IMG/VR virus record: IMGVR_UViG_3300020473_001965 | Location: 62,001 to 126,000 of that record | Strand: one strand, 5' to 3' | Length of the DNA stretch: 64,000 nucleotides | In this document: one piece after another, positions 6,783 through 62,821 of the stretch | Layout of the letters: each line of letters starts with the position of its first letter | How positions within the stretch are numbered: the first letter of the stretch is position 1 | Notes under the pieces: generated by a model | Told to the model about the DNA's origin: nothing | Database searches by the model: none | What the model saw: only the letters and a program-made list of their open reading frames with translations | Position numbers and translations under genes: made by a program

Positions 6783-6795
6783 CATAAATATCACG
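6783..6795 (-). promoter_or_regulatory. Class II (putative late) promoter motif CGTGATATTTATG
   Basis: Matches the recurrent CGTnATAWTTA motif, just upstream of the 1049-aa gene. Confidence 0.5.
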
Positions 6796-6806
6796 ATCGT
6801 ATTAAA

Positions 6807-6986
6807 TTAGCTGCTAGAAAAGAGAGAACATAGCTTTTTAAATTCGGAAGGCGTGCAGTTGACAACCTTATTGCCGTTCTTATTTAGCTGATAAAAAGTA
6901 TGGCCGGCGATTTTCGTTACAGACACGTCGAACGTATGTGTCTTGTTGTAACCCTTTACTTTTACAGACGCTAGTGTTTCAGTCAT
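6807..6986 (-). CDS. 59-aa hypothetical protein (below ORF-track cutoff)
   Basis: MTETLASVKVKGYNKTHTFDV...KLCSLFSSS*; fills the gap after the 6988 ORF. Confidence 0.5.
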   Translation of the reverse strand: MTETLASVKVKGYNKTHTFDVSVTKIAGHTFYQLNKNGNKVVNCTPSEFKKLCSLFSSS

Positions 6987-6987
6987 C

Positions 6988-14754: not shown

Positions 14755-15540
14755 CTAATTTGAAAATGGTACGTAGAGGTTTGTGTTTAACTTGTAGCCT
14801 CCGGCTTCCACATCTGCTTTAGCTTCTGCGTACGAAACAGATCGTGTAGCATCTTCAGCACCTCCAGCGCTTTCTGGAATGTAGACGGCTGCGTGTCGAG
14901 CGCCGCTCTTTGGAATGACAATTATTACACCGTTATTTTGATTGTATTGCATGGGCCCGATGTTTCCGTCACGTTCCTGCTTAAGCAGCCACTCAAGATC
15001 GCTCTCTCTTCCCGGAATTGGTATACCAGAAACTGTTACAAATCCGCGCGGGATTCGAAACTCATTGAGAAGTTGAATCTCTTCTTTAATAATCTGTTGT
15101 AGTTTTGCTTTGGTTATCTTCATGGTGTTCTCCATTGGACCGGCAGGAGGTGCTGCAGTTGGTGGAACTTGAATCGTTGCGCCGCTCATGTCAGAATGAG
15201 CTGTTTGGAAGCTTACGAACTGCGGGTGCTGCTTAAACATTCCCTTGATCACGTCCTTGATCAGCTGGCCCTGTTGCATCATCTCATCTTGAGTGTATCC
15301 CAGGCTTGATAACCACTCTAACAATTGAGGCTCACTTCTGCTTTTCTTCATAGCATTAAAGACAATGTAAAGCCCCATGTCGACTTGGCTTGACCATTCA
15401 AGCTCTGCAGCCCCGTATCGAGGTGCTGATTTTCCAGGTACCGGTGATAGTTCGTTGTGTATTTGATGAACCCGTTCAGATAGCACGCGGCTCAACTCTT
15501 CTTTAATAATCTGTCTTAATTTGTTTTTTGTGATTTTCAT
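14755..15540 (-). CDS. Leader-tagged protein, two leader copies
   Basis: MKITKNKLRQIIKEELSRVLSE (start re-called to 15540); internal MKITKAKLQQIIKEEIQLLNE. Confidence 0.75.
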   Translation of the reverse strand: MKITKNKLRQIIKEELSRVLSERVHQIHNELSPVPGKSAPRYGAAELEWSSQVDMGLYIVFNAMKKSRSEPQLLEWLSSLGYTQDEMMQQGQLIKDVIKGMFKQHPQFVSFQTAHSDMSGATIQVPPTAAPPAGPMENTMKITKAKLQQIIKEEIQLLNEFRIPRGFVTVSGIPIPGRESDLEWLLKQERDGNIGPMQYNQNNGVIIVIPKSGARHAAVYIPESAGGAEDATRSVSYAEAKADVEAGGYKLNTNLYVPFSN

Positions 15541-15556
15541 TTTGCTTCCTTTGACC

Positions 15557-16627
15557 TTAATCATACATTGGGGGTGTGTGTCTGACTGGTGCCCGCTTCT
15601 TGCGTGGCTTGGCACCATAAGCATAAAGCACATCTTCAATTTGTTTTAGAGTAAATCCTGCACGTTGTGCTTGATCGGCTGTAATATTACCATAGTCGGT
15701 GCCGCCGTCCTTGTATTCAATATTAATGTTACTTGGCTCGCCACCCTTGCGACGGACCTGATACGTTATCTTCTTGATATCATCCTTAGCTATGTAATCC
15801 ATTGTCAGTGAATTGCCGATAACTTCTCTTTCTCCTGGGTTTGGGTCCGCTTGATGCGCTGCATCCATGTCGGCACCACGCTGGTTCATCCAGGCAGACT
15901 CAAGATCTCTCATGAACTTACGTACTTTGTCAAGATCCCAGTTATCTGGAACGACAGCATCTTGAGAAAAAGACCCGTCGTTCCGACCTACCTTGTTTAC
16001 CCATCCGTTCATTGCGTCAAGGTCTAAGTCAAGATTCTCGTAGTTAACCATTTCATCAGCAAGCGCACCTTGAATGTCATTCGTAAGTGCATAGTTTGCA
16101 ACCCTGTTCATGGTATCCAGATCTTCATAAGGGTTTACCATAATTGGAAGCATTTTGCGCTCGCTGAGTATGGCTTCGCGTATAATTCTTCTAAGCTGTG
16201 ACTTCTTGATTCTCATCTTTCCCTCTGTGGCTGGAGGTAAATCATAGTCTGGTAGACCATGATCACCTGATTCTTGCCACTCACCTTTTCCATTCCAAAA
16301 TCCTGATGGATCTGCATCGGCAGGTGGTGGTCGTTCATGCCAGCCTTCTTGTTTAATGAGTGCTAATAGTTCGCTGTCATGCATCCACTCAGTTTTAGCA
16401 CCAGGATTTGCTCCGAAAACAACAAGAACGTTTGCACCCGGAGGGACTGGATCACCAAGGTCTATTGCGGCACTCACTGTCTCAGGCGAAGCTATGTCAT
16501 TGATATATCGAACTTCTCCGTCACGCGTGAATGTAACATTCCGCCAAGCAAAATGATCTTCAACCCAAGTGGGCACAGATACCACCTCTTGAATTATTCG
16601 CCTGAGCTGTGACCTCTTGATTCTCAC
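15557..16627 (-). CDS. Leader-tagged protein, two leader copies
   Basis: MRIKRSQLRRIIQEV; internal MRIKKSQLRRIIREAILSE. Confidence 0.75.
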   Translation of the reverse strand: MRIKRSQLRRIIQEVVSVPTWVEDHFAWRNVTFTRDGEVRYINDIASPETVSAAIDLGDPVPPGANVLVVFGANPGAKTEWMHDSELLALIKQEGWHERPPPADADPSGFWNGKGEWQESGDHGLPDYDLPPATEGKMRIKKSQLRRIIREAILSERKMLPIMVNPYEDLDTMNRVANYALTNDIQGALADEMVNYENLDLDLDAMNGWVNKVGRNDGSFSQDAVVPDNWDLDKVRKFMRDLESAWMNQRGADMDAAHQADPNPGEREVIGNSLTMDYIAKDDIKKITYQVRRKGGEPSNINIEYKDGGTDYGNITADQAQRAGFTLKQIEDVLYAYGAKPRKKRAPVRHTPPMYD

Positions 16628-16770
16628 TGTGATAAACTCCCTATGAATCCCATTACCATTACTACAACAAATACTGTTAATGGTATCATTGCTGCTGCCA
16701 TCATACCTAAATCTTTTGGTGTGACTCCTCGATGATCCATCCAGTCTTTGAGTTTTTTTATTGGCTTCAT
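16624..16770 (-). CDS. 48-aa membrane protein (below ORF-track cutoff)
   Basis: MKPIKKLKDW...MIPLTVFVVVMVMGFIG; 4-nt overlaps on both sides. Confidence 0.55.
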   Translation of the reverse strand: MKPIKKLKDWMDHRGVTPKDLGMMAAAMIPLTVFVVVMVMGFIGSLSQ

Positions 16771-16892
16771 TTCTTCTTGTCCTTGTTTTTCTTGACAGGG
16801 ACGGGCTGAAGCGCTGGCTGCAATCCCAGCAAAGCTGCTAGATCATCAATAAATTCGCTCACCTTGGCTCGAATGTCATCAAAGATTTTCAT
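16767..16892 (-). CDS. 41-aa hypothetical protein (below ORF-track cutoff)
   Basis: MKIFDDIRAKVSEFIDDLAALLGLQPALQPVPVKKNKDKKK*. Confidence 0.5.
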   Translation of the reverse strand: MKIFDDIRAKVSEFIDDLAALLGLQPALQPVPVKKNKDKKK

Positions 16893-16897
16893 TTTAT

Positions 16898-17296
16898 CTA
16901 GCCTGTTGTTGTTGCGTACACACTGTAAATGTCGTACTGATCTAAATCACCGATTTGCTGTATAAGCGCAGGGTTGCGGCCGCGCTCTATCGCGGATTGG
17001 ACGTTTCCTCTCACTCCTGGATCAGAAAGGTCAAGCAGTGTTACTGCCCTAAACATGTCTTCGGGTGTGATTGATGGTGCACCCTTTGGCACAAATTCCA
17101 ACCAAGCTCTGTCCCGAGGATGAATTCTTCTTCCATCGAATGTGGTAGTACCGCCTGTTCCAACCTTCCCGTGATAAGGGCCTGAGAGAGCGTCATCCAA
17201 ATAAGAATCGGATTCACTGAGGCCTTTTCTTTCACTCAGAAATCTTGAGACTTCCTCTTTTATAATCTGCTGAATTCTTGATTTAGCTATTTTCAT
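16898..17296 (-). CDS. Leader-tagged protein
   Basis: MKIAKSRIQQIIKEEVSRFLSE. Confidence 0.75.
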   Translation of the reverse strand: MKIAKSRIQQIIKEEVSRFLSERKGLSESDSYLDDALSGPYHGKVGTGGTTTFDGRRIHPRDRAWLEFVPKGAPSITPEDMFRAVTLLDLSDPGVRGNVQSAIERGRNPALIQQIGDLDQYDIYSVYATTTG

Positions 17297-17580
17297 TTTA
17301 AGGCCTTGGCGTCGTCGAGCTGACCTCGCTCGACTGTTGCTGTTAGATCCTCAATGAATTCATATGCAGCCGCTCGGCGATCGCCGGGATCGCGTATCGA
17401 CATAAGAGCATTGATCACATCTTTCATAGCAGTACCCAAATCGTCTTCTTCGTACTCATACTCCTTGAGCATTTCTTGACGCTCAGCATTTGAGCCAAAC
17501 TCTTTCTTGCTGGTCTGCCTGTTAAGTTTTGCAGCTTCCTCAGCAACAATTCTTTTAAGTTGTTTCTTGGTAATTTTCAT
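17293..17580 (-). CDS. Leader-tagged protein
   Basis: MKITKKQLKRIVAEE...MLKE. Confidence 0.75.
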   Translation of the reverse strand: MKITKKQLKRIVAEEAAKLNRQTSKKEFGSNAERQEMLKEYEYEEDDLGTAMKDVINALMSIRDPGDRRAAAYEFIEDLTATVERGQLDDAKALK

Positions 17581-17589
17581 TTTTATCCT

Positions 17590-17850
17590 CTACAATCTAA
17601 TGTTTCTTAGTCTTCTGTCCCTGACTATTGCTGCAGGTAGTTCTCCTAGCTCGAGATCTCTCTTTACTTGTGTCAGCTGTTCGGGGAAGAGTCGACCCTT
17701 GTCGACTTCGAACTCTACTTGACGCAGGAGTTCTGCCTTTTGTCGCTCAATCTCAGCGTTTTCACTAAGAGCATTAAGCACTTGCAGCTCTTCTCTTACT
17801 ATTTGACGAAGCTTTTTCTCTGTTAGTTTCACTATCTTCCTCGCTGCCAA
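17590..17850 (-). CDS. Leader-tagged protein
   Basis: VKLTEKKLRQIVREELQVLNALSE. Confidence 0.7.
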   Translation of the reverse strand: MAARKIVKLTEKKLRQIVREELQVLNALSENAEIERQKAELLRQVEFEVDKGRLFPEQLTQVKRDLELGELPAAIVRDRRLRNIRL

Positions 17851-18083
17851 GAATAGGCGAACCCATGCTTGCTAAAAAATGCGTTGAGCACCTCATCCAA
17901 CTCGGTTTCAAAGCCTACCGGAAGCAGACCGTGCTTGAGATCAGATTCAATGTTTACACTCAAGGTGTGCATTCCGCCGGCTGAGGGCCACATTCTAGCA
18001 GATGCTGTGCTGTTCGATTCGTTTAAAATCTTTTTCTGCTCTTCTTGGATGATTCTTCTGAGTTGTGACTTTTTGATTTTCAT
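17832..18083 (-). CDS. Leader-tagged protein
   Basis: MKIKKSQLRRIIQEEQKKILNE. Confidence 0.75.
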   Translation of the reverse strand: MKIKKSQLRRIIQEEQKKILNESNSTASARMWPSAGGMHTLSVNIESDLKHGLLPVGFETELDEVLNAFFSKHGFAYSWQRGR

Positions 18084-18089
18084 GATATC

Positions 18090-18290
18090 CTACTTTGCTG
18101 TTTGCGCTTGAGACAGCATCGCTGCTAGACGGTCTAGCTTTTTTCCTATGTCTGTTTCTTCGCCTACATCGTCAACTAGGCTAAACAGTTCCTGTCTTAC
18201 CTTTTCTATTATTTCATTCTTTTTTGACTCTGCCAACCGATCCTTCTCTTCTTGGATGATTCTTCTGAGTTGTGACTTCTTGATTCTCAT
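18090..18290 (-). CDS. Leader-tagged protein
   Basis: MRIKKSQLRRIIQEEKDRLAE; start re-called to 18290. Confidence 0.75.
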   Translation of the reverse strand: MRIKKSQLRRIIQEEKDRLAESKKNEIIEKVRQELFSLVDDVGEETDIGKKLDRLAAMLSQAQTAK

Positions 18291-18571
18291 TTTCTCTCCC
18301 AAGCTCCTCTTGAAGCTAAGTTTACTAGGGCAGGGATCACTTTGCCCCTCACGTACTCAAGTGCGTCTTGATAAACGTCATCGCCGTACAAGCCCGTGTC
18401 AAAGTTCTTCTGATCACTCTTGACGGCGCCGTCTTCAATCATCACTTCAACAATCTCATCGACGAGCTGTGCTACGCTGTGGTAGTCGGGACCAGCTTCG
18501 ACGCGAGCTTCCTGAAGGTTGGCAGCTTCTTCTTTGATTATCTGTCTAAGTTGTTTCTTTGTAATTTTCAT
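18287..18571 (-). CDS. Leader-tagged protein
   Basis: MKITKKQLRQIIKEEAANLQE. Confidence 0.75.
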   Translation of the reverse strand: MKITKKQLRQIIKEEAANLQEARVEAGPDYHSVAQLVDEIVEVMIEDGAVKSDQKNFDTGLYGDDVYQDALEYVRGKVIPALVNLASRGAWERK

Positions 18572-18572
18572 T

Positions 18573-18845
18573 TTAAGCTCTCGGTACCGACTTTAAGAAA
18601 TTGTGCACTAACTTGAATGCCTTTTTTAATTCTAGAAATTTCTGAGGTGTCAGCTCACCCGCATCGCGTTGCCTCATTGCTAGCGCAGGAAGGACACTGC
18701 TAAGATCTACAGCTACATCGGACGGGTGTTTCTCGTGCGGCAAGTGGTCGTCCTCGATGTCGCCGGGGCGCGTGTACGCATCAGCAATCAATCTAGCCTG
18801 CTCTTCTTGGATGATTCTTCTAAGTTGTGACTTCTTGATCTTCAT
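18573..18845 (-). CDS. Leader-tagged protein
   Basis: MKIKKSQLRRIIQEEQARLI; start re-called to 18845. Confidence 0.75.
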   Translation of the reverse strand: MKIKKSQLRRIIQEEQARLIADAYTRPGDIEDDHLPHEKHPSDVAVDLSSVLPALAMRQRDAGELTPQKFLELKKAFKLVHNFLKSVPRA

Positions 18846-18853: not shown

Positions 18854-18982
18854 CTAGCAACAACTACAAGAGTCGCAACTGCACGTGCAGCATTCGCAGC
18901 ACTTTGATTCTTTCTTGGGCGGACATGTTTCACCGCAATCTTCATCGTGGTGATTCGTGATCTTTTGATCTAAATTTCCCAT
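18854..18982 (-). CDS. 42-aa Cys-rich metallothionein-like protein (not in ORF track)
   Basis: MGNLDQKITNHHDEDCGETCPPKKESKCCECCTCSCDSCSCC*; 11 Cys, purine-rich RBS (AGAGGAAGAGAAAG), fills the gap before the next start. Confidence 0.7.
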   Translation of the reverse strand: MGNLDQKITNHHDEDCGETCPPKKESKCCECCTCSCDSCSCC

Positions 18983-19088
18983 CTTTCTCTTCCTCTACAG
19001 TTAATTGACCGGAGCCCGACGAAAATGGGAGATGTTCCGGTCTCATTTTATTTTAGCGTGGGCTCAGACCTACCAATCCCACGTGATT

Positions 19089-19100
19089 ATAAATATGACG
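19089..19100 (-). promoter_or_regulatory. Class II promoter motif CGTCATATTTAT heading the leader array
   Basis: Matches CGTnATAWTTA. Confidence 0.5.
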
Positions 19101-30727: not shown

Positions 30728-31154
30728 TGTATTTTGCTGATTCGCCAAAGGAATGATCGAATCATGATTCTTTCTAAAGGGCTTTGCGTTATGAATGCTC
30801 GTTACTTTTCCATCAGCAAAAACTCGATAAGTAACAGTGTCTGGGTCGGGTGTTGATCTCACTTCACATATCAAGTACAGTGTTTCGGACTTGTCGGGAT
30901 TTATTACTTTTATGATATCACCAGGCTCTGCACAGGGGTGACTCTTGATTTGAGAATTCATTGGCAAACAACTCTTGGGGGACAGAGATAAGTATCCCTC
31001 CAGGAGACAATGCTACCCAAACTATATTTCTACCTTCTTCAAAGGGGCCGTCAATTAGAGTCAAGACAGCACCTCGAGAAACTTTTATACTCATTCTAGT
31101 ATCAAAAAAATCTTGTTCTAAATCAATTCTATCGCCGACTTCGTACTCTTCCAT
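30722..31154 (-). other. Two small SH3-like ORFs (30722-30967, 30918-31154)
   Basis: EPGDIIKV; YEVGDRIDL. Confidence 0.45.
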
Positions 31155-31953: not shown

Positions 31954-32094
31954 ACTAGTAATTATTACTCACTTACAATAGAATCATGGCTTTTATTATC
32001 TACCGCCTTGTCTTCCATTATTTCCTTTTTTACATGATACCACAACGTGAAACTCAAAGACAGGCTTACAATTAATGCAATCAACTTGTAAATA

Positions 32095-34692: not shown

Positions 34693-34701
34693 AATTCGTC
34701 G

Positions 34702-35130: not shown

Positions 35131-35172
35131 TTTTCCTTCTTTCTTTTGTGCATTTTGCACGGTTATTAGTGC

Positions 35173-35415: not shown

Positions 35416-35425
35416 TTGATGCTCC

Positions 35426-35794: not shown

Positions 35795-35815
35795 TTGGCA
35801 TGATGCCCTCCTTAG

Positions 35816-35903
35816 TGGCGGAAGCGGTGAGATTCGAACTCACGATACGTTTCCGTATGCCGGTTTTCAAGACCGGTGCCTTAAGCCGCTCGGCCACGCT
35901 TCC
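35816..35903 (-). tRNA. tRNA-Ser (TGA)
   Basis: GGAAGCGTGGCCGAGCGG...CTTGAAA...GTTCGAATC...CTTCCGCCA; long variable arm. Confidence 0.95.
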
Positions 35904-35905
35904 AG

Positions 35906-36505: not shown

Positions 36506-36520
36506 AGCTTATCCATAAAA

Positions 36521-36596
36521 TGGCTCCCCGAGCAGGACTTGAACCTACGACCCGCTGATTAACAGTCAGCTGCTCTACCAACTGAGCTATCGGGGA
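36521..36596 (-). tRNA. tRNA-Asn (GTT)
   Basis: TCCCCGATAGCTCAGTTGGTAGAGCAGCTGACTGTTAATCAGCGGGTCGTAGGTTCAAGTCCTGCTCGGGGAGCCA. Confidence 0.95.
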
Positions 36597-38705: not shown

Positions 38706-38984
38706 TTAGTCAATTTCTGTAATCATTTCTGCAACAGCACTCTGAAACGCTGGGTGAATTGCCACGCTCTTAAGATTATCTGGTGAGCAGTCCTGACCGT
38801 AGAGTACACATACTTCTCTTGCGATCTTTGTCAAGCCCTTGACAAAAACATTTCTCGCTGTTGCATGATTCATCTTGTGACCTTCTTCTGTCATCTTTTC
38901 AGCAATAGACCGATAATCCATTCCAGACAAATCATTTACAGTTGCATAGCCTCGCTCAATCTTAGTTCCTTTAGGCATTGACAT
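38706..38984 (-). CDS. HTH protein resembling a detached sigma region 4.2
   Basis: MDYRSIAEKM...MNHATARNVFVKGLTKIA aligns by eye to TLEEVG...VTRERIRQIEAKALRKL. Confidence 0.6.
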   Translation of the reverse strand: MSMPKGTKIERGYATVNDLSGMDYRSIAEKMTEEGHKMNHATARNVFVKGLTKIAREVCVLYGQDCSPDNLKSVAIHPAFQSAVAEMITEID

Positions 38985-39746
38985 TTATTTTCCCTCCATG
39001 AGTTTCATATATTTTTCTTTAGAGATTGGATAATCAGAATGATTTGTGCTGTCCTCAGTAATTCCGAATCTAAGCCTGATTATCTTTTCTTCCCTAGAAG
39101 TCAAGCATCGCAAACCTTTGCGAACAGCTCCGGTAATTTTTTCCTTGTCCAGAATATCATCTAAGTGTGTAGCATCACTATCAGGGACGATATCTTCAAG
39201 GGTCCCGGATTCATCTTTCCCAATCGGCCGGCTAAGTGACGTTGTATTGGTCGGCGCTTGCAAAGCATCTTCAATCAACGAAGTTGTCACGCCTAAGATA
39301 TCAGCAAGTTCTTCTTTAGTTGGGGCTGAACCGAATTCATCCTCATACTCTTCAGAGACATTTTTGATCTTAGATAGTAGACCTCGAGCGTGAGATGGAA
39401 TTCTAATAGTCGACGTGTTTGCTGTAACATGTCGGCGAACTGACTGACGAATCCACCAAGTTGCATACGTAGAAAAACGAAAGCCTCGACGCCAATCGAA
39501 TTTCTCAACAGCTTTCATCAAGCCAATGTTAGATTCTTGAATCAGATCAGAAAGATCACATCCAAAATGCTGATATTTCTTAGCGATGCTCACAGCTAGT
39601 CGCAAGTTTGACTCGATCAACTTCCTTCTAGCTTCGGGGTCACCTGCCTCGATTCTCTTTGAGAGTTCTACTTCTTCATCTTTGGTAAGAAGTTTAGACT
39701 TCCCAGCTTCTTTAAAGTAAACGTTAAGTAAGTTAGACACAAACAC
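38985..39746 (-). CDS. RpoD/RpoS-like sigma-70 factor, truncated after region 4.1
   Basis: [57 protein letters not shown] then ends. Confidence 0.9.
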
Positions 39747-39781
39747 CTTCTCGTCAATGTACGCTGAATTGCGTTATATAT

Positions 39782-39811
39782 ATTTTACCACAAAAAATCT
39801 AGCTCTTACAC
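39782..39811 (-). promoter_or_regulatory. Class I promoter GTGTAA-N18-TAAAAT upstream of the sigma gene
   Basis: Read directly from sequence; extended -10 TG. Confidence 0.55.
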
Positions 39812-40531: not shown

Positions 40532-40906
40532 TTAGATTACCAAAGGCTTACCATTTACCATGTAGGGTTTGTCATTTAATTTGACAATTTTTACGATCCT
40601 TACATTTGCTGCTTTTTTGATAGCATTGCCTAGCTTTTCAAGAGAGACTGTAATATTTCCCTTTGCTGGTAAGAACTTCACAGAAATAGGCAAAACGGTC
40701 CTTCCCAACTTTGATCTTAAAGAATGATCTGTTTGCCCTACAACTGCAACGCCTTGAAGTACTCTTATTATTGTCATTGTGTCTGTTACACTAGCATCTC
40801 TATCAAGAAACAACTTCATATCACAATCAGCTAATCTTGATGTGGGCCCTTCCTTTTTCTCAAGAATTAGGGCTTTTACAGTATTTTTTAAATCGTCTCT
40901 ATTCAT
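40532..40906 (-). CDS. Hypothetical protein with leader-like N-terminus
   Basis: MNRDDLKNTVKALILE; CGTAATAATTAT at 40929-40940. Confidence 0.6.
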   Translation of the reverse strand: MNRDDLKNTVKALILEKKEGPTSRLADCDMKLFLDRDASVTDTMTIIRVLQGVAVVGQTDHSLRSKLGRTVLPISVKFLPAKGNITVSLEKLGNAIKKAANVRIVKIVKLNDKPYMVNGKPLVI

Positions 40907-40969
40907 CGAAGCAACTCTAAACCTGCGTATAATTATTACGAGAAAAGAGAAAGATTGGTCATTTAAAAA

Positions 40970-43367
<2,398 letters not shown>

Positions 43368-43442: not shown

Positions 43443-43847
43443 TTATTTCTTCCAGTTTGCGAAACCTACACCTACGCCGCCCATATTCACTTGGCGACCA
43501 GTACGTTTTACCCTAGAGTAACCAGAAACTCCAAAGAACTCATCGTCTTCTTCGGTTTCATCTGACTCAGCCAACATTGCTTTCAACTCTTGACGAATCG
43601 CATCTCTGAGTCGTGACTCTACTAAAGCTGTCTTGGACTCTTTAATTGCGTATTCAACATCAATTTCATTGATGTCTTCATCTTCATTATCTTCAGAATG
43701 AAACTTCGACTCAACGGTCTGTTCGCTCTGATATGGCTGGTGTGTTTGAACTGGTTCTTCTGCAAGGCCTTCGTTCAAAGGTTGTGTCTCTTCACCTTCG
43801 CCTAAGCCTGCAAGTCTTAAAATTCTCTCTGAAAGGAATTCCATCAC
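43443..43847 (-). CDS. Acidic protein with RxxxLAGL and leader-like motifs
   Basis: ERILRLAGL; LVESRLRDAIRQELKAMLAE; CGTTATATTTAA at 43863-43874. Confidence 0.65.
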   Translation of the reverse strand: MMEFLSERILRLAGLGEGEETQPLNEGLAEEPVQTHQPYQSEQTVESKFHSEDNEDEDINEIDVEYAIKESKTALVESRLRDAIRQELKAMLAESDETEEDDEFFGVSGYSRVKRTGRQVNMGGVGVGFANWKK

Positions 43848-43893
43848 TGTCTCCTTGTAGTATTAAATATAACGCACAGACAGTTTTTTCTAC

Positions 43894-45169: not shown

Positions 45170-46936
45170 TTAAGTCGCTAGATCTAGGTCGACATCTTCT
45201 TCTTCAGCTTGCTCCTCTTCAGCTTCCTCTTTCTTTTTCTCCATTATTTCGACCATTTCATTTTTTGCTTTTTCTCTCTCGGACTCTAAAACATCAAGGC
45301 CAGATTCTAATCCCTTGACTACTGTTTCATATCCGTCTTCAAATAAAATTGTAACCATCTGTTCCCACATCGGATCTTTGCTCGAATCATAACCTGATTT
45401 TTTTACTAAGCTTTCGTAAGCATCAAAATTGGGCGAAATCATGTCTTTAAAAGACTTTTCATCAAGTGAGTCCACAAAAGATTCTACATAGCTAGGTCTA
45501 AACTGTGCTATTATACGTGACATTATTTCATCATCTTGTTCTTCAATGGCTAGCTCATATGCTTCTTTGATATCATCTTGCTGAGAAAACACTTCAAAGC
45601 CCTTCTTGAACAAGGGTTGTGCAGCATTTAAATCAGACGTCTTTGCAGGCTTCAGCCCCTCAGCCATCTCCTCTCCCAAATAAGCTTGAATATCAGCGAT
45701 TATGGCTTTCAAAGACTTTGCAGCGCCTGATGATTCTTTTTGTGCTACTAGGTTTAGCCATTCTAGGGACGTCAAAATATCTAAAAATAATTCATCATCT
45801 GTCGATGTTATGTTCAATTTTGACCTTAGATCTTCGGGCTCATCGCTGAAATCGCCCATTCCGCCGGCGCCTTTTAAAAATTCTGCAAACGCTTCAATAT
45901 CGTCAAGATCAGCATCAGCTTTTCTATGACCTCGTTCCCAATTCTTCAAGGCGTCTTGCGACTGGTCCCAAAGTTTAGTTAGAGTCCCTGTCAGTCTCCC
46001 AGGGAAAACATCATTGATTCCGTCTTTTGCAGGGACGTATGCATCTTCTCTAGATAGAAGCAAAGCATGCATTGCAACAATTCTTGGTAGATATTTTCTC
46101 TCAATTGCTTTACTTAAATCTTGTTGATTCTTTTTCTGATTCTCTCCCGGATCTTCTTCGTAAATCGTTTTTAAGAGATCTTCTGGATCTATTCTTTCAT
46201 TGTCAGAAAGAATTACTGAAATTGTTAGCTTGGACAGCCAGTCATCGTCAGCGAGATCACCTGCTACGGTCGCATCTGTTATTGCATTTTTAACTGTGGG
46301 ATTTCCTCTCGCGCGTTTGACAGCATTACTTACCCATCGAGGTATTTCCTTGCCGTTGTAGTCATCTACAGCTGCTTCTGTCAAAAGGGCGCGCTCCCAC
46401 TTCTCAATTATTAGAGCTGCGTCTCTGGTGTGAGATTCTCCTATAATTGATTTGTGAAGAATATCGTAAAAGTTTTTATTGTCTTCAGAGAATTGGTTGC
46501 TTTCCGCAGAATACTTGTCAAGTAGAGCCATGTATTCTCTTCGCTTATGCTCTCTCTCGAACACCTCGAGGCACCAGAATGAAGCTGGTGCGCCGACCAA
46601 TATTTCTGGCACACCTATCTTTTTAGCACGAATAATAGAAGACTTCTCTCTATCTAAGTTGGCGAAGTGTTTCTCCAGGTCGCCTCGGGTGTAGTCAGCC
46701 ACTTCTTTCCAAAAGTTTTTCCATCCGCCTTTTATCGCGCCTCCGACTGCTGATGCTATTGCTTGCCAGTTAGGTGCAAACCCCTTGACAATTCCTATAA
46801 GATCAGAAAGACCTGCTATGTCCTCATTGACAGCATCATCGTGATACATTGATCTCACATCCTGCGACTCTTTAATAGAGTTTCTGGCCCGAACAAGAGA
46901 ATTTTTGAAATCTGGCTTTTTCATATTTCTTTGCAC
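45170..46936 (-). CDS. Large acidic helical protein, possible virion internal protein
   Basis: Several (I/L)xE sites; CGTAATATTTAT at 46943-46954. Confidence 0.55.
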   Translation of the reverse strand: MQRNMKKPDFKNSLVRARNSIKESQDVRSMYHDDAVNEDIAGLSDLIGIVKGFAPNWQAIASAVGGAIKGGWKNFWKEVADYTRGDLEKHFANLDREKSSIIRAKKIGVPEILVGAPASFWCLEVFEREHKRREYMALLDKYSAESNQFSEDNKNFYDILHKSIIGESHTRDAALIIEKWERALLTEAAVDDYNGKEIPRWVSNAVKRARGNPTVKNAITDATVAGDLADDDWLSKLTISVILSDNERIDPEDLLKTIYEEDPGENQKKNQQDLSKAIERKYLPRIVAMHALLLSREDAYVPAKDGINDVFPGRLTGTLTKLWDQSQDALKNWERGHRKADADLDDIEAFAEFLKGAGGMGDFSDEPEDLRSKLNITSTDDELFLDILTSLEWLNLVAQKESSGAAKSLKAIIADIQAYLGEEMAEGLKPAKTSDLNAAQPLFKKGFEVFSQQDDIKEAYELAIEEQDDEIMSRIIAQFRPSYVESFVDSLDEKSFKDMISPNFDAYESLVKKSGYDSSKDPMWEQMVTILFEDGYETVVKGLESGLDVLESEREKAKNEMVEIMEKKKEEAEEEQAEEEDVDLDLAT

Positions 46937-47030
46937 TCAACAATAAATATTACGCACTGCTAACAATTACACAGAATATAGATTTGTACATTAAACAATT
47001 TTTTTGTATAATTCATCAAAAGAGGTTTGT

Positions 47031-47780: not shown

Positions 47781-47828
47781 CAAAAAATAGTTCTAAAGTC
47801 GCATACTTATAAAAAGAGGTATGCGCTC

Positions 47829-48554
47829 TTGAGACAGATTAAAATCATAGTGGTAACACTATTAGCCGGTGTGGCGATATACACTGGCTACGCCTTCTTT
47901 AATCATGGACATCAAGATGAATCTCAAGAAAAACAACAACAAAGCTATGTAACTGAAGAAGCTGTTGTTGATTTAGAGTTTATTGATCATCAGGCGTCTT
48001 ACGCAGAAATAGCGTCTAGAAAGTCATCGGTACAAGTACACAACCCGGATTTTCGAGGTTTTGGCTCTGGTACATATTTTGTACAAAAGGGCCGCCATTT
48101 TATACTGACAGCTGCACACGTCGTAGACGATAAAGAGCACATGATGATCTCAGGCAGAGATGAGATTGTGCCCGGGCGCGTGGTTTATACAAATCCGGCT
48201 ACTGATATTGCCGTCATAGAAGTCGATAAAATGAATACACGTGATCCTGTGCGTCTTCGTGTCAATGGTAACCCACACGTGGGTGATGCGGTTGCATACA
48301 CTGGCTTTCCGAACGGTACAGATCTATTAACCATCACGGGAAGAATTAGCGGCTATAGGGGCAGCTGGGTTGTTATTCAAAGTTATACATGGATGGGTGC
48401 ATCAGGAAGCGGCGTTTTTGACTCCAGAGGAAGGCTTGTTGGCGTTGTCTCAATGGTAGAAATTGGCCATTACAGAGCGCCCCAAGTTATTGAAGATGTT
48501 GGTTATGTTGCTAAAATATCTGAAGCTGATGTGCGAGGAATTAGAGGGTTGTGA
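47829..48554 (+). CDS. Membrane-anchored trypsin-like serine protease
   Basis: N-terminal TM, LTAAHVV, DIAVI, GASGSGVFD. Confidence 0.88.
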   Translation: MRQIKIIVVTLLAGVAIYTGYAFFNHGHQDESQEKQQQSYVTEEAVVDLEFIDHQASYAEIASRKSSVQVHNPDFRGFGSGTYFVQKGRHFILTAAHVVDDKEHMMISGRDEIVPGRVVYTNPATDIAVIEVDKMNTRDPVRLRVNGNPHVGDAVAYTGFPNGTDLLTITGRISGYRGSWVVIQSYTWMGASGSGVFDSRGRLVGVVSMVEIGHYRAPQVIEDVGYVAKISEADVRGIRGL

Positions 48555-52918: not shown

Positions 52919-54225
52919 TTATTTTATAATCTCAGTGATGACGTCTCGTTTGTCCTGAGATTCTCCCACTTTAATTGGTGGGCTAAACTCTCTCTCAGGA
53001 GCAGACTTGTCAACTGATTTTTTCTTCACTGACTTCTTTATTTTTTGTTTGATGCTCTTTTTGTTAGGATCGGGTGCCTTGACCTTAGATTTAGTCTTAA
53101 CGTCAACTTTCCCTTTTCCTTGATCGGGCTCCTGAACATCAGATCCCTCTACATCTTTTGTCAAAATAACAGAAATGGCTGCGAGAAATTTATAGAGCGC
53201 TATTCTGTCAGGCTCATCTAAATCATCGTAGTAATCAACTAGCTCCATCTTTGTTTCTGGGTCTTTTAGAGATTTTCCAGACCTTAGCTGATCGATCATT
53301 TTTCTGATATCTTGAAACTTTATCTCTGGTGGCACATCTAACTTGACGAACTTTTCGTCCTGTTCTGGCTCTTTTTTCGCCTCTTCTTCCCCTTGCGCCT
53401 CTTCAGATTCTTCCTCATCAACAAGCATGGGTCTTTCTGCATCGTAAGTCTTGCCTCGAAGGTCTCTTGCCAGTGATTTTTGGCGTTCTTCTTCTTCGGG
53501 ATTCTCAGACAATGCTGTTTGAACTGCCTCTTTTGTTAGCTTTTTTAAGAGACTCTGAAGTTGCTCCGGGTAACTTATCACAATTACCTCACTTCTTGGT
53601 TGTTTTAGGTCTGTAGACTACGCGATTCTGTGGGAGTTCTCTGTAAAGCCTGTTGTACTTACGCTGGGGTAGCTCAGCATGTCCTTCAGCATACTCTTTT
53701 ATCTTCTCTTTTGCAGCCTCTTCCCTCTTGACAATGTCATTCATAAACTTATCAAAGTGGAATTCTGGGATGTACTCTTCATCATGATTGTTGTTGTTGT
53801 TGGACATGTTTACCTCTTTAATTAAATATTATCTTTACCTGGTAATTTTCAGAATCATTGGGCTTTATAAGATTAATTTTGTACTTATTGACACCCACCT
53901 CTCCAAAATCGAACTTGGCCGTTTCAAACCCGTTGTCATCTAATAGATTTACGCCTAAGATTGGATTCTGATTACTTAAAATGTCAACTAGTGTCCCCAG
54001 CTGAGAATCGGCTTCTAGAACAATTTCTTCTAAGTTTGAGCCAAACAGTAACGACCGAGTGGGCATTACAAGCTGAATGTCTTTGAACAAGATCACAGAT
54101 TCGAGGAGATCTGCTTCTCCATCTTCATACTCAAAATCACTGTATTCTTCACTTTGAGAAGAAAGAGACGATTCTGTCAATCGTCCTGTCAAAGAATTGC
54201 TAACAAAAAAAGTACTGTCGGACAT
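52919..54225 (-). other. Three hypothetical ORFs (52919-53581, 53589-53807, 53818-54225)
   Basis: Co-oriented; GAGG RBSs; the first begins QLQSLLKKLTKEAVQTALSE. Confidence 0.55.
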
Positions 54226-54226: not shown

Positions 54227-54619
54227 TTATCCTCTCACGTGTCGAGCGTCTTTGTAGATTAAATCTACTTCTTTAGCGTATTTTATATCTAAGCCTGTCA
54301 CTTCGTTTAAATCATGTGTGTAAATTTCTATCTCAACGTCTTTTGGATTTATCGTTATCGTCCCATGGTGATTCATCTCTTCCTGAAATACAAGTACTTC
54401 TGCAACGAAAAAGAGACGCTGTTCAGGTGAATCAAAATCGAAGCGCCTATGGAGCTTATTGGGACTATCTGTCTGTGTCCAGGTTTGCTTTGGTGCTTCA
54501 ATAGGTAGTTTTCTAGGCAATCCTATAGCTTCGTTAAGAGATTCAACCAGAGCTAATTCTGATTCATTCTCGTCAAGGTGGCCGTTAGACTTCATTATCT
54601 CTAGAATTGATCGACCCAT
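54227..54619 (-). CDS. Pterin-4-alpha-carbinolamine dehydratase-like protein with N-terminal extension
   Basis: W......KL.R.F.F, EMNHHG.I, IYTHD...VT.LD..YA..VD. Confidence 0.75.
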   Translation of the reverse strand: MGRSILEIMKSNGHLDENESELALVESLNEAIGLPRKLPIEAPKQTWTQTDSPNKLHRRFDFDSPEQRLFFVAEVLVFQEEMNHHGTITINPKDVEIEIYTHDLNEVTGLDIKYAKEVDLIYKDARHVRG

Positions 54620-55749
54620 TAGCTTCTCTTAGCAAGTTCTTTGTCTGCTTTCTGAGCTGCCTTCTTGAGCATTTTACCATATTCTTCGGGTGTGTAAGCC
54701 TGGATTAGCTCTTTGAGATCATCTAGGATGAATTTGTGCAAAGAATTGTTTTCACTGTGCGGCTTCCCGTTTCCATATTCTCTGCCGGTTCCTAATGTAT
54801 GCCACTGGGAAACTAGATCCACAGAAGACTTTATTCCACCCGAGTAGTAGTCTGACAGTAGTTGATGTACGAAGAATCTAAAGACTTCACGAGGTGCTTC
54901 TAATTCTTTTGAATTTGTAAATCTGTCATACACAGGTAGTTGAGCGGCATCCGGATTTAGCTGCTCAGTCATATCTTGAAAAACAAGATAGAGAATTTTT
55001 TCAATCTCAGTGGCAGTGCCCATTACTTCGGGGTCAAGTCTTGTTGGAATTGCTGACCTACGAGATGGTCGCTTGCTAACCTGAGCATGGTCTCCTGCCT
55101 TTTTCATAAAGTCATATAAGACGTTAGTTACAGCTGAGCGACCTACGCCCATTTGAGCTGCAATGGCATCTATTATTTCTCCAATAGTTAAAGCGTTGGG
55201 ACCCATTCTCAATTCTGGATCGAACAGGTCGACCGTCTTTAGCTCTTCGGGAGTAAGCTTAGCTCTCTTTTGAAAAGCTTGTACTATTGCTTCTTCATCA
55301 GGTTCTTCTTCAGAGTACTCGCCTGCTTCGTCATCACCTGAATCGATTGCTTCGAGATCAGCGGCTGTTGGGCCTTCGAGATCTTTCATCCACTCGGGCT
55401 CATCATCCATTTCGTTAACCACACTCTCTATGATTTTTACGAGAACCATCTCATCGTTTGACTGCTCTCTAATCTTCTTCACTGATTTTCTAAGCTTCTT
55501 ATAAATAGTTGTCTGTTGGTCCTCTGTGAGTTTTGAAAGCAGCCTTCCTAGCTTTCGCATTGTTGGGTTTGACTCAAAAGCTGGTACTGATTTTAAGTTT
55601 CCCACTTCTGCACCGCTCACAGAAGGTTGAGGGCGGACAGGGACGACAGGAGGTTCGTTCACTACTACTGGATCGTTACCTGATGACGCCAGGCCCAACG
55701 TCTCTTTTATTAAAGCTTGTAGCTTGTTTCTTTCAATCTTAGTGGGCAT
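54619..55749 (-). CDS. Leader-like hypothetical protein with possible HTH
   Basis: KIERNKLQALIKETL; TIGEIIDAIAAQMGVGRSAV; GATGATATTTAT upstream. Confidence 0.55.
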   Translation of the reverse strand: MPTKIERNKLQALIKETLGLASSGNDPVVVNEPPVVPVRPQPSVSGAEVGNLKSVPAFESNPTMRKLGRLLSKLTEDQQTTIYKKLRKSVKKIREQSNDEMVLVKIIESVVNEMDDEPEWMKDLEGPTAADLEAIDSGDDEAGEYSEEEPDEEAIVQAFQKRAKLTPEELKTVDLFDPELRMGPNALTIGEIIDAIAAQMGVGRSAVTNVLYDFMKKAGDHAQVSKRPSRRSAIPTRLDPEVMGTATEIEKILYLVFQDMTEQLNPDAAQLPVYDRFTNSKELEAPREVFRFFVHQLLSDYYSGGIKSSVDLVSQWHTLGTGREYGNGKPHSENNSLHKFILDDLKELIQAYTPEEYGKMLKKAAQKADKELAKRS

Positions 55750-55811
55750 TTATATCTCCTCGAAAAATCACACATATAAATATCATCTTAACATAGAAGA
55801 TTATTAACTTA

Positions 55812-58956: not shown

Positions 58957-59640
58957 TCACTTAAGTGCTTTTGCGATCTTCTCAGCTCGCTTAAATCGGT
59001 CCTCGATGACTTGCCAGTTTAGTTCCTTCATCATCGCGTATACATAAGACTTTCTCTTTGAAAGATAGTCCCTGTAATATGAGTGCTCCCACACGTCGAC
59101 GACAATCACGGGATAGAATCCGACCGGAACATTAAGGCTGTGTAAGTCGATTACTGTGTTCATGTATCGTTGCGTGTATGTGTTGTAGCCTGTGACTACC
59201 CAACCATTTCTGGCAGACTTTGCACATGCTATAAAGTCTTCTTGCCATGCATCGAAAGATCCGAAGTCTCTCTCAAGACGCATAAAAGAGAGTGTGTCCA
59301 TAGAAACTTCGCTTTGGACATCGCTAATGTTGTTAAAGAAGAGCTCGTGTAGATAAGCAGCGTTCATGTTGTACGTTTCATCCACTTTCAAGCTTCGGAA
59401 GTAAGAATGATTTAAGCCCGCCTCATCTCGATTTGCGGCGTCGAGCTCAGCTGAGACTCTATTAAATGTTTTTACATAGTTCTCATACAAGCCCTCATGT
59501 GCGTGCTTGTTCTTTTGGGTTAAAAGCTCAGTGGGCAAATCAAATTGCTTCTTTTGCAACACGAGTGCTTCATTAACTTCTTCTTCTTCGATTCCCAAGG
59601 AATCTCTGATTATTTCTCTTACACCATCTTTAGTAATCAT
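58957..59640 (-). CDS. Fe/Mn superoxide dismutase-family protein with leader-like N-terminus
   Basis: H..LY..YV, LHELFF, FGSFDAW, DVWEHSYY.DY; MITKDGVREIIRDSL...VNE. Confidence 0.85.
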   Translation of the reverse strand: MITKDGVREIIRDSLGIEEEEVNEALVLQKKQFDLPTELLTQKNKHAHEGLYENYVKTFNRVSAELDAANRDEAGLNHSYFRSLKVDETYNMNAAYLHELFFNNISDVQSEVSMDTLSFMRLERDFGSFDAWQEDFIACAKSARNGWVVTGYNTYTQRYMNTVIDLHSLNVPVGFYPVIVVDVWEHSYYRDYLSKRKSYVYAMMKELNWQVIEDRFKRAEKIAKALK

Positions 59641-60011
59641 TAGTCCACCACATATTCTTTTTCTAAATCTTTCTTGCTAACTTCTAGAGATTCCACTTCG
59701 CCCGTATCCGGATTCACATACTCTAGATTGACTGAGTCGGGGCCGATATGACTAACTGTGTACTCATACCCGCGTGGCCCGCCATTGGGTAAATGTGTTA
59801 CTCGGGTATCGAGGCCAAGATTGTCCACCTTTACTCGAGGTTCTTGGTCTTTCGGCTTTTCATCTTTCTTTGTGTCACCCGGGTCTTCAACAGACTTGTC
59901 AGCCTTCATACCATCAGCCGGCTTTTCAGAAAGCTCCTTGATTACGTCACGAAGATGCTGATCATACTGATCACGCATCATTCGAATTATTTGTTTCTCT
60001 GTTAATCTCAC
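59640..60011 (-). CDS. Leader-like hypothetical protein
   Basis: GTG start after GGAAGG: MRLTEKQIIRMMRD...IKELSE. Confidence 0.55.
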   Translation of the reverse strand: MRLTEKQIIRMMRDQYDQHLRDVIKELSEKPADGMKADKSVEDPGDTKKDEKPKDQEPRVKVDNLGLDTRVTHLPNGGPRGYEYTVSHIGPDSVNLEYVNPDTGEVESLEVSKKDLEKEYVVD

Positions 60012-62746
60012 TTTCCTTCCCCTAAACCTGCTAGTGTCATCCATCTTTCGTCAACCTGAGACTGCTCATGAGCTCTTGACTCTGTTATTACATCTGTTGA
60101 CTCGGGCCCCTCTTTAACAAGGCCGTATGTGACGAGCACATCGACGATTTTGTCTCTAGTTGCCTTGTCCTGGAATGATTGTCGGCGTTTGTCACCAAAA
60201 GCATTGCTTACTGCCTTGTTTGCTGCTGCTCGAGAGACCTTTGACTTGTTTGATACAAACTGATTAAAGATTTTTTGAACCAGTCTTTGTGTAGCTGCTT
60301 TGTTCTTGGCGCCTAATTTTGGATATTCAAACGACCCGCCTTTTGAAGTCTTTGATTTTTTATCTTTCTTCAAGTAGATATCAGAAGTAACAGATTTGTC
60401 GACTGTAAAGTAAGGTTCTACCTCGACACCTTTTCTGCGGAGATCGGGTGAACCCATGTCTTTCACCATTTGATCGTATGTTCTGTCTTTAACTGGTTTG
60501 TTTCTACCTAAGTGGGTCACACCTTTTCGTCGATCATCTAGATCACTTGAGGATGGCGTTGTATCTTTTCCAGTAATGCCTTGATCTTGTGCCGCTTGGA
60601 ATCTTTCTTTTTCAGTTTCGTATCGCTTGAGTGTAATTCCTCCTCGAGTCCGGTGGGCGTGAACGCCGTCGTCGTCAAGACGAAGAATTGCTAGTCTTGG
60701 TTTATCATCACCTGGTTTTGGTGGTACGGGAGGTACGGGAGGGTCGTCTTTTCCGCCAGTTCGTTTGTCATTAAGCGTGAACTGGCCGTCTCCGACGGCA
60801 CCATCGAGCATCTCTTTGGTAATCGGCCCAAATTCTGGGTGCTTTACTTTTAATAGCGCGTTCACCCACTTGAGAAGTGTCGGATAGTCGTCAAAGTTTT
60901 TGAAAGACGCACCAAACGTTCCCTCATCTTCTGGGTAGTTTTTAGGTTCACCCTGCCTGTTCTTGAATATGAACTCACCTTCGTGAGCTTCTGAAAGCAG
61001 ATCGATTATGGCATCAGGCGTTGTTATTCCTAATTCTACTAATGCAGGCAGGTTGGGCACATACCCAGAAAGATCTAGATCTACTTCCTCTTCTTCACCG
61101 GTTTCTGGATCTTTGACTGTTATTGTCATACGATTGGCAAAAAGGTCTATCACGATTTGCTCGTCTTCACCAGGCGGTGGAAGTGGAGGATCGTCTTCTC
61201 CACCTTCTTTACCTACATCCTCAAATCCGTCAACCATGACCTTGAGGATGGACATGCGAGAGCCGCGGATCTTGCCCGAACCTTTTTTACCACCCTTGCC
61301 TTTCCATCGAAGGAATCCACTAGCAGCACCTGCAGCTAGAAACCCTAACCCGAAGCCTTTGAGCAAGGGGCCGGCCCACTTCATAAGGCCGTTCAACACA
61401 TCATTCCTGAACGTATCATCTTCAACTATTCTAGTCTGATCTGGCATTGACTGGGAAAGCGTCTGAGATACATTCTCTGAGAACTGACCTGGGTCTATTC
61501 CGAAAAGTTCTGATCCTGCTTTTCCCATACCAGATGTTGCGTCGCCCGCGCCGCCGACAAAAGCTGTTACAGGGTCTGCGTTTGATGAAATAAGGTTGTC
61601 CACAGCTGCTGGACCCTTAGAGTCCATCATCGATGCTTTGATCAACTTAAGCAACTGTGCATTCTTCCCGCCGCCGAAGACAGTTCCCATGGAGGGTCCG
61701 CCTGCTTTACCAAATGTGCCGTCTCCCGTTATTCTTCGAACAACACGGATGATACCTTCTTCAGGCTTGACTTCACCCAAACCTACTGATTTCGAAATTG
61801 TTTGGGTTACTGTTTTTCCTGGAACTGTAGTTGTAGTTACATCCTTCATTGACTGCATCAAATCTTGAGCAAAAGGTGTGTCAGCTGCCCACCCGAGTGT
61901 CATCATAGCTGCGCCCGTTCCGATAAGAACGAGAGGTAACTTATACCCATAAGCAGCTTCAAAGTTTGCGGCGACATCGCCCTCTTTCCGACCAATTGAC
62001 TTTTCTTCTTGGCCTTCAACCTCTTCGAAGAGTAGGTCAGCAAGTGACTCTTCTTTACTCTCCCTATAGTAGTACTGGTCGTTCATCGCAAAGTCTTGGA
62101 AGTAAATTACTACCCCTCGAAGAACAGCGATAATGGTGTTGGCCGTTTTTGTATCAAGCTGCTCGGCGTCATGAGCAGAAACTACATCATCATAGATTTT
62201 TTGAAACTTAGCTGCTTCAGTCTTGAAACCGGATTTGTTTGCCTTGTTAGGGAATTCTGCTTGAACAAGCTCATCATACAAGTCTGAAAGCGGTTTATAT
62301 TCTATTGCTTTTAGCCAAGATTCTGCTTCTCTCTTTGCATTATCTTTAAGTTCTTGTCGCTTCTTGATATCAAACGTCTCATTTCCCCCTAGAAGTGTTC
62401 CGGCTTTGTTTCCGAACATTCCAATGTCTTTGATCCCTTTGATTCGATCAACTGTCTTAGCAAAAAAGCCGCGGGTGTCTTCGCCGGCTTCTTCTTGCTT
62501 GGCTTTCAGCATTTTCTTCAATGCAGATTTTGACAAAGCTTTAAGTTCGGCCTCGTCTGCTTGTGGATCACGATCCATTATCTTTTTGATCAAAGTTTTC
62601 TTTCGAGTGAAACCCAGTAACTCATTCAGCTCATCGTCTGAAAGCCCATTATTTGATGCTAAGATTGCTATGTGCTCTTCTGTCAAGTTGGCAAAATCTT
62701 CGTCGTCGAGCTCAAAAAGCAAAGATTCTAAGTCGTGTTGATTCAT
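60008..62746 (-). CDS. 912-aa protein with Gly-rich hydrophobic segments; possible ejected/internal virion protein
   Basis: Two TM-like stretches, Pro-rich linkers, C-terminal ITES...ERWMTLAGL; CGTAATAATTAG at 62778-62789. Confidence 0.55.
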   Translation of the reverse strand: MNQHDLESLLFELDDEDFANLTEEHIAILASNNGLSDDELNELLGFTRKKTLIKKIMDRDPQADEAELKALSKSALKKMLKAKQEEAGEDTRGFFAKTVDRIKGIKDIGMFGNKAGTLLGGNETFDIKKRQELKDNAKREAESWLKAIEYKPLSDLYDELVQAEFPNKANKSGFKTEAAKFQKIYDDVVSAHDAEQLDTKTANTIIAVLRGVVIYFQDFAMNDQYYYRESKEESLADLLFEEVEGQEEKSIGRKEGDVAANFEAAYGYKLPLVLIGTGAAMMTLGWAADTPFAQDLMQSMKDVTTTTVPGKTVTQTISKSVGLGEVKPEEGIIRVVRRITGDGTFGKAGGPSMGTVFGGGKNAQLLKLIKASMMDSKGPAAVDNLISSNADPVTAFVGGAGDATSGMGKAGSELFGIDPGQFSENVSQTLSQSMPDQTRIVEDDTFRNDVLNGLMKWAGPLLKGFGLGFLAAGAASGFLRWKGKGGKKGSGKIRGSRMSILKVMVDGFEDVGKEGGEDDPPLPPPGEDEQIVIDLFANRMTITVKDPETGEEEEVDLDLSGYVPNLPALVELGITTPDAIIDLLSEAHEGEFIFKNRQGEPKNYPEDEGTFGASFKNFDDYPTLLKWVNALLKVKHPEFGPITKEMLDGAVGDGQFTLNDKRTGGKDDPPVPPVPPKPGDDKPRLAILRLDDDGVHAHRTRGGITLKRYETEKERFQAAQDQGITGKDTTPSSSDLDDRRKGVTHLGRNKPVKDRTYDQMVKDMGSPDLRRKGVEVEPYFTVDKSVTSDIYLKKDKKSKTSKGGSFEYPKLGAKNKAATQRLVQKIFNQFVSNKSKVSRAAANKAVSNAFGDKRRQSFQDKATRDKIVDVLVTYGLVKEGPESTDVITESRAHEQSQVDERWMTLAGLGEGK

Positions 62747-62821
62747 TATATAACTCCGCGTGCCTGCAGCCTACAATCTAATTATTACGCAAAGAGACAA
62801 AATAATGACACACGCAGCTGT

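Follow-up and report, generated by a model that had tools for sequence, protein, structure and literature searches.

Phage promoter classes and their readers order gene expression in large lytic phages, and almost nothing is known about them in uncultured marine jumbo phages. Late promoters of phage T4 carry TATAAATA at -10, which is read by the sigma factor gp55 with the co-activator gp33 and the clamp gp45. Middle and late promoters of the Thermus phage P23-45 are -35-less and of the extended -10 type, and are used by the host sigma factor with phage modifiers. The gp28 and gp33/34 sigma factors of the Bacillus phage SPO1 read two-box promoters. Here, a short A/T-rich element, (c)GTnATA(A/T/C)TTA (the box, or class A), was analysed in a 64,000-nt stretch of DNA (the window) comprising bases 62,001-126,000 of one viral contig, IMGVR_UViG_3300020473_001965 (IMG/VR; 235,672 bp), from an uncultured marine phage. 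An initial annotation had listed eight copies and read them as a single-box late promoter, analogous to that of T4, in front of genes for leader-bearing, virion-destined proteins. The box probably defines a late-type, -35-less, -10-type promoter class that is read by the phage's own truncated, RpoD-like sigma factor.

The P23-45 and SPO1 systems resemble this one in having phage-specific promoter classes that redirect the host polymerase later, but neither motif matches ATAWTTA. The analogy with T4 was retained as a functional likeness. In both phages, whose capsid, portal and prohead protease are of the T4 type, a single A/T-rich, -10-type box without a -35 lies close to the start codon and is found ahead of tail and head genes; the reader is, or here would be, a phage sigma factor without region 4, although the factor here keeps region 4.1. 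The analogy did not extend to the sequence or to gp55 itself. The box has a G three nucleotides upstream of its core and is not TATAAATA, the candidate sigma factor is RpoD-like with regions 1.2 to 4.1, and the polymerase is DnaE-type. The 235.7-kb contig, which is ~87% complete (CheckV), was not matched by the T4 gp55 protein, phrog_234 or phrog_12791. Group 2 jumbo phages with a gp23-type capsid have been described, in passages on sigma factors, as carrying minimal sigma factors or ones close to cellular RpoD and as using the host core polymerase (Iyer et al., 2021; PMC7824862). Those passages mention no promoter motif, no loss of region 4.2 and no conserved 92-aa neighbour, and a literature search returned no description of an ATAWTTA box.

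The contig is linear, with 42.6% G+C and ~83% of its genes on the minus strand. It has no DNA-level closeness to any cultured phage, and neither megablast of 7 kb nor tblastn of a 376-aa protein matched one. Its structural genes are distantly T4-like (gp23-type major capsid protein, gp20-type portal, large terminase, tail tube and baseplate hub) and lie outside the window, at 182-235 kb of the contig (genome coordinates below). A T4-like, gp21-type prohead protease is encoded at genome 207284-207895, and the replication genes include a DnaE-type polymerase and a DnaB helicase.

Occurrence and positional enrichment of the box

All eight listed strings were found on the minus strand at the positions assigned to them (Table 1). 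The consensus CGTnATAWTTA was exact in six; the copies at 31959 and 55776 deviate in the prefix and keep the core ATAWTTA. These six were the only matches to CGTNATAWTTA in the window (0.17 expected), all on the minus strand and all on the coding strand, and more than one match was never obtained in 100 shuffles. The whole genome holds seven exact copies, again all on the minus strand, as are 12 of 12 matches to GTNATAWTTA. The invariant portion is a 7-nt core, ATA(A/T/C)TTA, usually with cGT before it.

Enrichment against an A/T-matched background was confirmed with a positional test, in which a 7-mer was scored when it lay 8-55 nt upstream of a Shine-Dalgarno sequence and start codon. ATATTTA (12 of 28 copies) and ATAATTA (12 of 26) took the first two ranks among all 128 A/T-only 7-mers, together reaching 24/54 against a pooled background of 12.8%. 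Intergenic 7-mer enrichment also singled out ATATTTA and ATAATTA, together with ATACTTA. The box precedes roughly 25-30 of ~320 genes, chiefly where a run of genes begins. A de novo expectation-maximisation motif search of 170 upstream regions yielded diffuse A/T or Shine-Dalgarno motifs, and the class is not defined by that method alone. A position weight matrix built from 15 seed sites added only about 3-5 further sites above background, and there is therefore no large hidden population of boxes.

The box is A/T-only, precedes start codons by 5-35 nt and lies immediately 5' of the Shine-Dalgarno sequence, and it could instead act in the mRNA, as an A/U-rich translational enhancer, a site for ribosomal protein S1 or, within the 5' untranslated region, an operator for an RNase or a repressor. 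We consider this very unlikely. The box marks a minority of genes, mainly run heads, and not each gene, and other A/T 7-mers are not positioned in this way. The G at -3 and the purine at +12 (see below) would not be expected of an A/U enhancer, and only 5-6 nt lie between the box and the ATG of the nucleotidyltransferase gene.

Conservation of the box in diverged relatives

Four diverged relatives were compared: the IMG/VR contig G001 (49 kb, syntenic with genome 120-175 kb) and three metagenomic contigs reached through the sigma gene, namely scaffold_21, JAOKRB010000002 and GBIDBA_10000586 (88%, 74% and 69% sigma identity, respectively). Relatives stem from Guaymas Basin plume sample 3300001683 and from Tara samples. 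An identical sigma factor is encoded on a 296-kb contig, and one with 88% identity on a 219-kb contig. Seven of the eight listed sites have an equivalent in these relatives, six of them at the orthologous upstream region. The core is kept amid drifting flanks in the regions at 46944, 43864, 40930, 31959, 55776 and 62779 and at genome 136623 and 173661. ATA(A/T/C)TTA was present in 23 of 23 orthologous upstream regions, and in a box-anchored alignment identity to the window was 97% in the core versus 47% in the flanks. One of the 15 relative regions (G001, 912-aa gene) was anchored on a second box, beside the ribosome-binding site, and not on the orthologous CGTTATAATTA, and the flank figure is therefore slightly lowered. 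The distance from box to start codon mostly stayed within 1-4 nt across orthologues, with differences of 8-9 nt in two regions.

At individual sites, the box at 43864 is conserved at the loci of four relatives. ATATTTA at 46944 is retained in L021 and L023, and ATAWTTA at 40930 in L021, L023 and L024 with diverged flanks. ATGATATTTATA at 55777 is identical in L026 and L027, and CGTTATAATTA stands at the place matching 62779 in G001, where the proteins share 62% identity. The equivalent of the 19090 box is an ATACTTA 32 nt before the first leader-tagged gene in GBIDBA_10000586, in front of the equivalent operon. ATACTTA replaces ATATTTA at one further orthologous site, and the ATACTTA at 47803 is identical in L026 and reads ATACCTA in L027. 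With ATACTTA at equivalent sites and, in two genomes, before the trypsin-like gene, C is thus tolerated at the fourth core position. The cGT prefix is for the most part a peculiarity of the window genome; the relatives keep a G 2-3 bases ahead of the core. When the relatives were pooled, ATATTTA and ATAATTA lay upstream of starts in 16 of 67 cases against a background of 7.2%.

Box anatomy and putative promoter register

Alignment of 22 sites gave no information-rich column upstream of the G, and hence no shared -35; counted from the core, only A at -18 and T at -15/-14 were preferred, and weakly. The single-box character that had been proposed was thereby borne out. The reported lack of a TGTA -35 also holds in the geometry of the two-box promoters described below: the GTGTAA near the 46944 box is only 15 nt, not 17, from the -10 register. 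When 38-57 kb was scanned for sigma-70 promoters, no two-box promoter was reported at its four box sites. Of the 22 aligned sites, 19 have a purine at position +12, which is 5-6 nt past the box. In the window and likewise in L021 and L024, three genomes in all, the nucleotidyltransferase gene lacks a Shine-Dalgarno sequence and its ATG falls exactly at this position, at a distance of 5-6 nt from the box, which suggests that this gene is a candidate for a leaderless mRNA starting at the ATG. At sigma-70 extended -10 promoters transcription begins 6-8 nt after the -10 hexamer; the purine and the nucleotidyltransferase gene are indirect indications of a start at such a distance here.

This geometry fits a -10-type promoter, and from the sequence we infer that the box is one. 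The register would be that of sigma-70, G(-14) T(-13) n(-12) A(-11) T A W T(-7) T A. So placed, the box would retain both of the -10 positions that matter most, together with the G of the extended -10, while T at -12 is not conserved. In this putative register the G at the -14 equivalent occurs in 11 of 22 sites, and the base before it is C or G, not T. The box would in that register share with the sigma-70 extended -10 element (TGnTATAAT) independence from a -35 as well as three bases, G(-14), A(-11) and T(-7). It differs in lacking T at -15 and a conserved T at -12, in an invariant TTA that reaches into the discriminator, and in that the phage sigma factor has Gly at the equivalent of E458, the residue contacting the TG motif in E. 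coli.

The likeness to the extended -10 raises an alternative in which the box is an ordinary -10 of the host primary sigma factor, weak or extended -10-like, with no phage factor and no temporal meaning, and in which the two promoter classes differ only in strength. Cores in the early region and boxes before metabolic and chaperone genes would suit this alternative, as does the retention of A at -11, T at -7 and G at -14 in the preferred register. It is nevertheless unlikely in our estimation. The box does not conserve T at -12, the invariant TTA that follows -8 has no place in the -10 of the other promoter class of this genome (TAkAAT), the two classes remain distinct at orthologous sites in four relatives, and the genome carries a sigma factor unable to read a -35.

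Class B promoters

The second class, class B, has the form GTGTAA-N17-(TG)nTA(g/t)AAT and corresponds to the class with a TGTA -35 in the initial annotation, whose separation of the box as a promoter class of its own was upheld. Class B sequences serve early and replication genes: they stand before the genes for the sigma factor, a 254-aa protein and the DNA polymerase, and before many small genes at genome 29-62 kb. They too are conserved in relatives. Plausible class B promoters span genome 29 to ~146 kb, with none in the structural module, and the intergenic gaps of that module hold only the box class. An identical leader, aagaaagtaaggag, comes after several of the copies, suggesting that early promoter cassettes have been duplicated. 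The sigma gene lies behind a class B promoter and thus not behind a box.

Phage sigma factor and its 92-aa neighbour

The contig encodes one protein of the sigma-70 family, the candidate reader of the box. It is RpoD-like (226-240 bits with RpoD models) and matches Pfam PF00140, PF04542 and PF04539, for regions 1.2, 2 and 3, all above cut-offs. The helix-turn-helix of region 4.2 was not found in it: its alignment to SigA stops at residue 329 of 371, only positions 2-20 of the 50 in PF04545 are matched, and PF04545 has no other match in the genome. A sigma factor without region 4.2 cannot read a -35, and the phage factor therefore fits the single-box class and not the two-box class. The residues equivalent to E. 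coli T440, which contacts -12, and E458 are Arg and Gly, respectively; the equivalents of Q437 and H455 are kept. The changes are compatible with altered preferences at -12 and -15/-14, which is only suggestive.

A 92-aa gene lies directly 3' of the sigma gene, stop abutting start, in every relative examined, even at 50-54% sigma identity. Its family comprises ~290 metagenomic proteins, none of them annotated. Prediction of a complex of the two proteins supports binding, in terms of model confidence: the ipSAE was 0.71, with 0.00 for the best control. Of 78 solved complexes 51 attained that mark, as did 2 of 108 mismatched pairs. At least 49% of contacts recurred between runs, partner pLDDT was 66 or more, and the predicted interface is on sigma residues 203-229, which form region 4.1. 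For the 92-aa protein, no sequence match was found in the PDB, no fold match with Foldseek, VIA or Atlas, no Pfam or PHROG family and no detectable homology to sigma region 4.2; comparison with T4 gp33 by hhalign gave a probability of 0.5%.

Together these observations raise the tentative possibility of a two-piece sigma factor, common among uncultured marine jumbo phages, that recognises the box. One piece would be an RpoD-derived polypeptide ending after region 4.1, and the other the separately encoded, always adjacent 92-aa protein, docked on region 4.1 as a substitute for region 4.2. This reading is put forward only as a hypothesis, because homology to region 4.2 or gp33 was not found. If correct, it would be an RpoD-derived counterpart of the gp55/gp33 'split sigma' of T4 with a promoter of its own, GTnATAWTTA, switching on late genes including those for leader-tagged proteins presumably delivered into the capsid.

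The predicted position of the 92-aa protein on region 4.1 also suits a different assignment, in which it could restore -35 reading. The phage sigma factor and the 92-aa protein would then read class B, whose GTGTAA -35 is unusual, and the box would have another reader, an undetected gp55/gp33-like pair or an activator. The T4-like structural genes (capsid, portal and protease) and the incompleteness of the contig are in keeping with such a reader. This assignment seems improbable to us, since gp55 was found neither by protein search nor by two PHROG profiles, and the 92-aa protein has no detectable sigma region 4 or gp33 homology. In addition, the promoters of the sigma gene and of the dense small-gene region are class B, so that the sigma factor would be needed before it is made.

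Genes behind the box and proposed order of expression

The initial annotation would have been contradicted by absence of the box before capsid and tail genes; boxes were found before the tape measure, tail tube and sheath 2 genes and in the TerL region. The claim that each box precedes a gene or operon with leader or LxE features was true of several first genes and operons. It did not hold throughout, and the box is not specific to leader proteins, because it also precedes the run ending in GroEL, the nucleotidyltransferase gene and the trypsin-like protease gene.

About 15 genes start with MKI(K/T)KSQLRRIIxEE or a looser L-x-x-I-x-E, seven of them consecutive behind the 19090 box. The looser versions include the first genes behind the boxes at 6785, 40930, 55776 and genome 173661. 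The leader recurs in GBIDBA_10000586 (L031, 13563, 13835 and 16444), and Pfam contains no family for the leader-tagged proteins. The T4 prohead protease cleaves after L/I-x-E. From the leader motif, the gp21-type protease and this cleavage rule, it is plausible that the leader is a capsid-targeting propeptide, and the proteins may be virion-destined. The 'late' timing of genes behind the box is presumed, on gene content.

In the scheme that we favour, class B transcription would come first and supply the phage sigma factor, which, lacking the -35-reading region 4.2, probably directs the host core RNA polymerase to the box. Transcription would start at the purine 5-6 nt past it. The adjacent 92-aa protein may act with the sigma factor. 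The genes then turned on would include those for the tail and head packaging and the operons of proteins sharing the leader, which would make the scheme functionally analogous to late transcription in T4 via gp55. It pairs a conserved cis-element with a specific candidate reader, a sigma factor without its -35-reading domain and with a conserved small partner, and it links a promoter class to a protein family with a common N-terminal leader that may be capsid cargo. In metagenomic genomes of this phage lineage, the box also offers a means of predicting where operons start and to which timing class genes belong.

Several observations weigh against this scheme. The major capsid gene has no box in its own 37-nt upstream gap. 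Boxes also precede non-structural genes, including three directly upstream of the sigma gene, and GT-less ATAHTTA cores occur before a few presumed early-region genes; the temporal class is therefore not clean. Conservation at 53823 and at genome 136623 overlaps upstream coding sequence (at 53823, the 3' end of the upstream gene). The weight-matrix census is circular, being built from seed sites. The box could be read by the host sigma factor as a weak -35-less promoter, and as the contig is ~87% complete, a gp55-like factor could lie in the missing part.

Individual sites and other features of the contig

Coordinates are collected in Table 1. Two window sites, at 53823 and 47803, were absent from the earlier list. 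The 588-aa open reading frame (ORF) behind the 46944 box has 584 codons when counted from the ATG at 46924. IMG/VR searches with this protein gave no match, and those with the 1049-aa protein behind the 6785 box gave no relative.

Table 1. Positions of boxes, class B promoters and associated genes (window coordinates unless marked genome)
Feature	Position	Strand	Context
Box CGTGATATTTA	6785-6795	-	19 nt upstream of ATG of 1049-aa gene (3616-6765), leader-like N-terminus
Box CGTCATATTTA	19090-19100	-	Followed by ~100-nt hairpin-rich leader, 40-aa Cys-rich ORF and seven leader-tagged genes (18845 down to 15540)
Box AGTAATAATTA	31959-31969	-	5 nt before ATG of nucleotidyltransferase gene (31129-31953)
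Box CGTAATAATTA	40930-40940	-	23 nt before 124-aa gene (40532-40906)
Box CGTTATATTTA	43864-43874	-	19 nt before 134-aa gene (43443-43847), head of run ending in GroEL (40970-42556)
Box CGTAATATTTA	46944-46954	-	19 nt before ATG at 46924 of 588-aa ORF (45170-46936)
Variant box ATACTTA	47803-47809	+	19 nt before trypsin-like gene (47829-48554, +)
Ninth box GATAATATTTA	53823-53833	-	15 nt before 72-aa gene; kept in L026, L027
Box GATGATATTTA	55777-55787	-	27 nt before 376-aa gene (54619-55749)
Box CGTAATAATTA	62779-62789	-	32 nt before 912-aa gene (60008-62746)
Box outside window	genome 186766		Before tape measure
Box outside window	genome 189274		Before tail tube
Box outside window	genome 196024		Before sheath 2
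Box outside window	genome 206355		Before 163-aa gene
Box outside window	genome 212787		Before 128-aa gene and TerL
Core-only copies (no GT prefix)	genome 204908, 204926		Before 518-aa gene and capsid operon
Leader-tagged genes	15540-18845	-	
Leader-tagged genes	11695, 58549; genome 26911, 173635, 206847		
Class B promoter (GTGTAA-N-TGgTAAAAT)	39777-39810	-	Upstream of sigma gene; conserved in L021, L023, L024
Class B copies	9024, 9838, 20631, 30726, 39810, 44710, 52901		
Sigma-70-family gene, candidate box reader	38985-39746	-	Regions 1.2, 2, 3 and 4.1; no region 4.2
Conserved 92-aa gene adjoining sigma gene	38706-38984	-	Predicted to bind sigma region 4.1

The minus-strand stretch at 18860-19089, next to the 19090 box, consists of ~100 untranslated nucleotides with two hairpin-forming repeats, followed by the Cys-rich 40-aa ORF (MGNLDQKITNHHDEDCGETCPPKKESKCCECCTCSCDSCSCC); Rfam gave no match for it.

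No homologue of the beta subunit of a multisubunit RNA polymerase was found in the contig. A search of the contig for a T7-type RNA polymerase was uninformative, as its control matched nothing either. A phiKZ-like, AR9-like or Bacteroidetes-type promoter was dropped as a candidate in view of the T4-type capsid, the strong use of Shine-Dalgarno sequences and the failure to find a phage RNA polymerase.

In the structural module, tandem tail-sheath paralogues of 1155 and 1060 aa are encoded at genome 189302-195994, with the sheath-family match confined to the C-terminal ~330 residues. The minus strand at 34617-36596 of the window holds three tRNA genes (Gly-TCC, Ser-TGA and Asn-GTT) interspersed with small genes. 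Host-like auxiliary genes in the window encode asparagine synthase (32095-33726), GroEL (40970-42556) and a metallophosphoesterase (37097-37834), to which syntenic relatives (loci L026 and L028) add QueF, pterin-4a dehydratase, Fe-SOD, an MT-A70 methylase, dCMP deaminase and DNA ligase.

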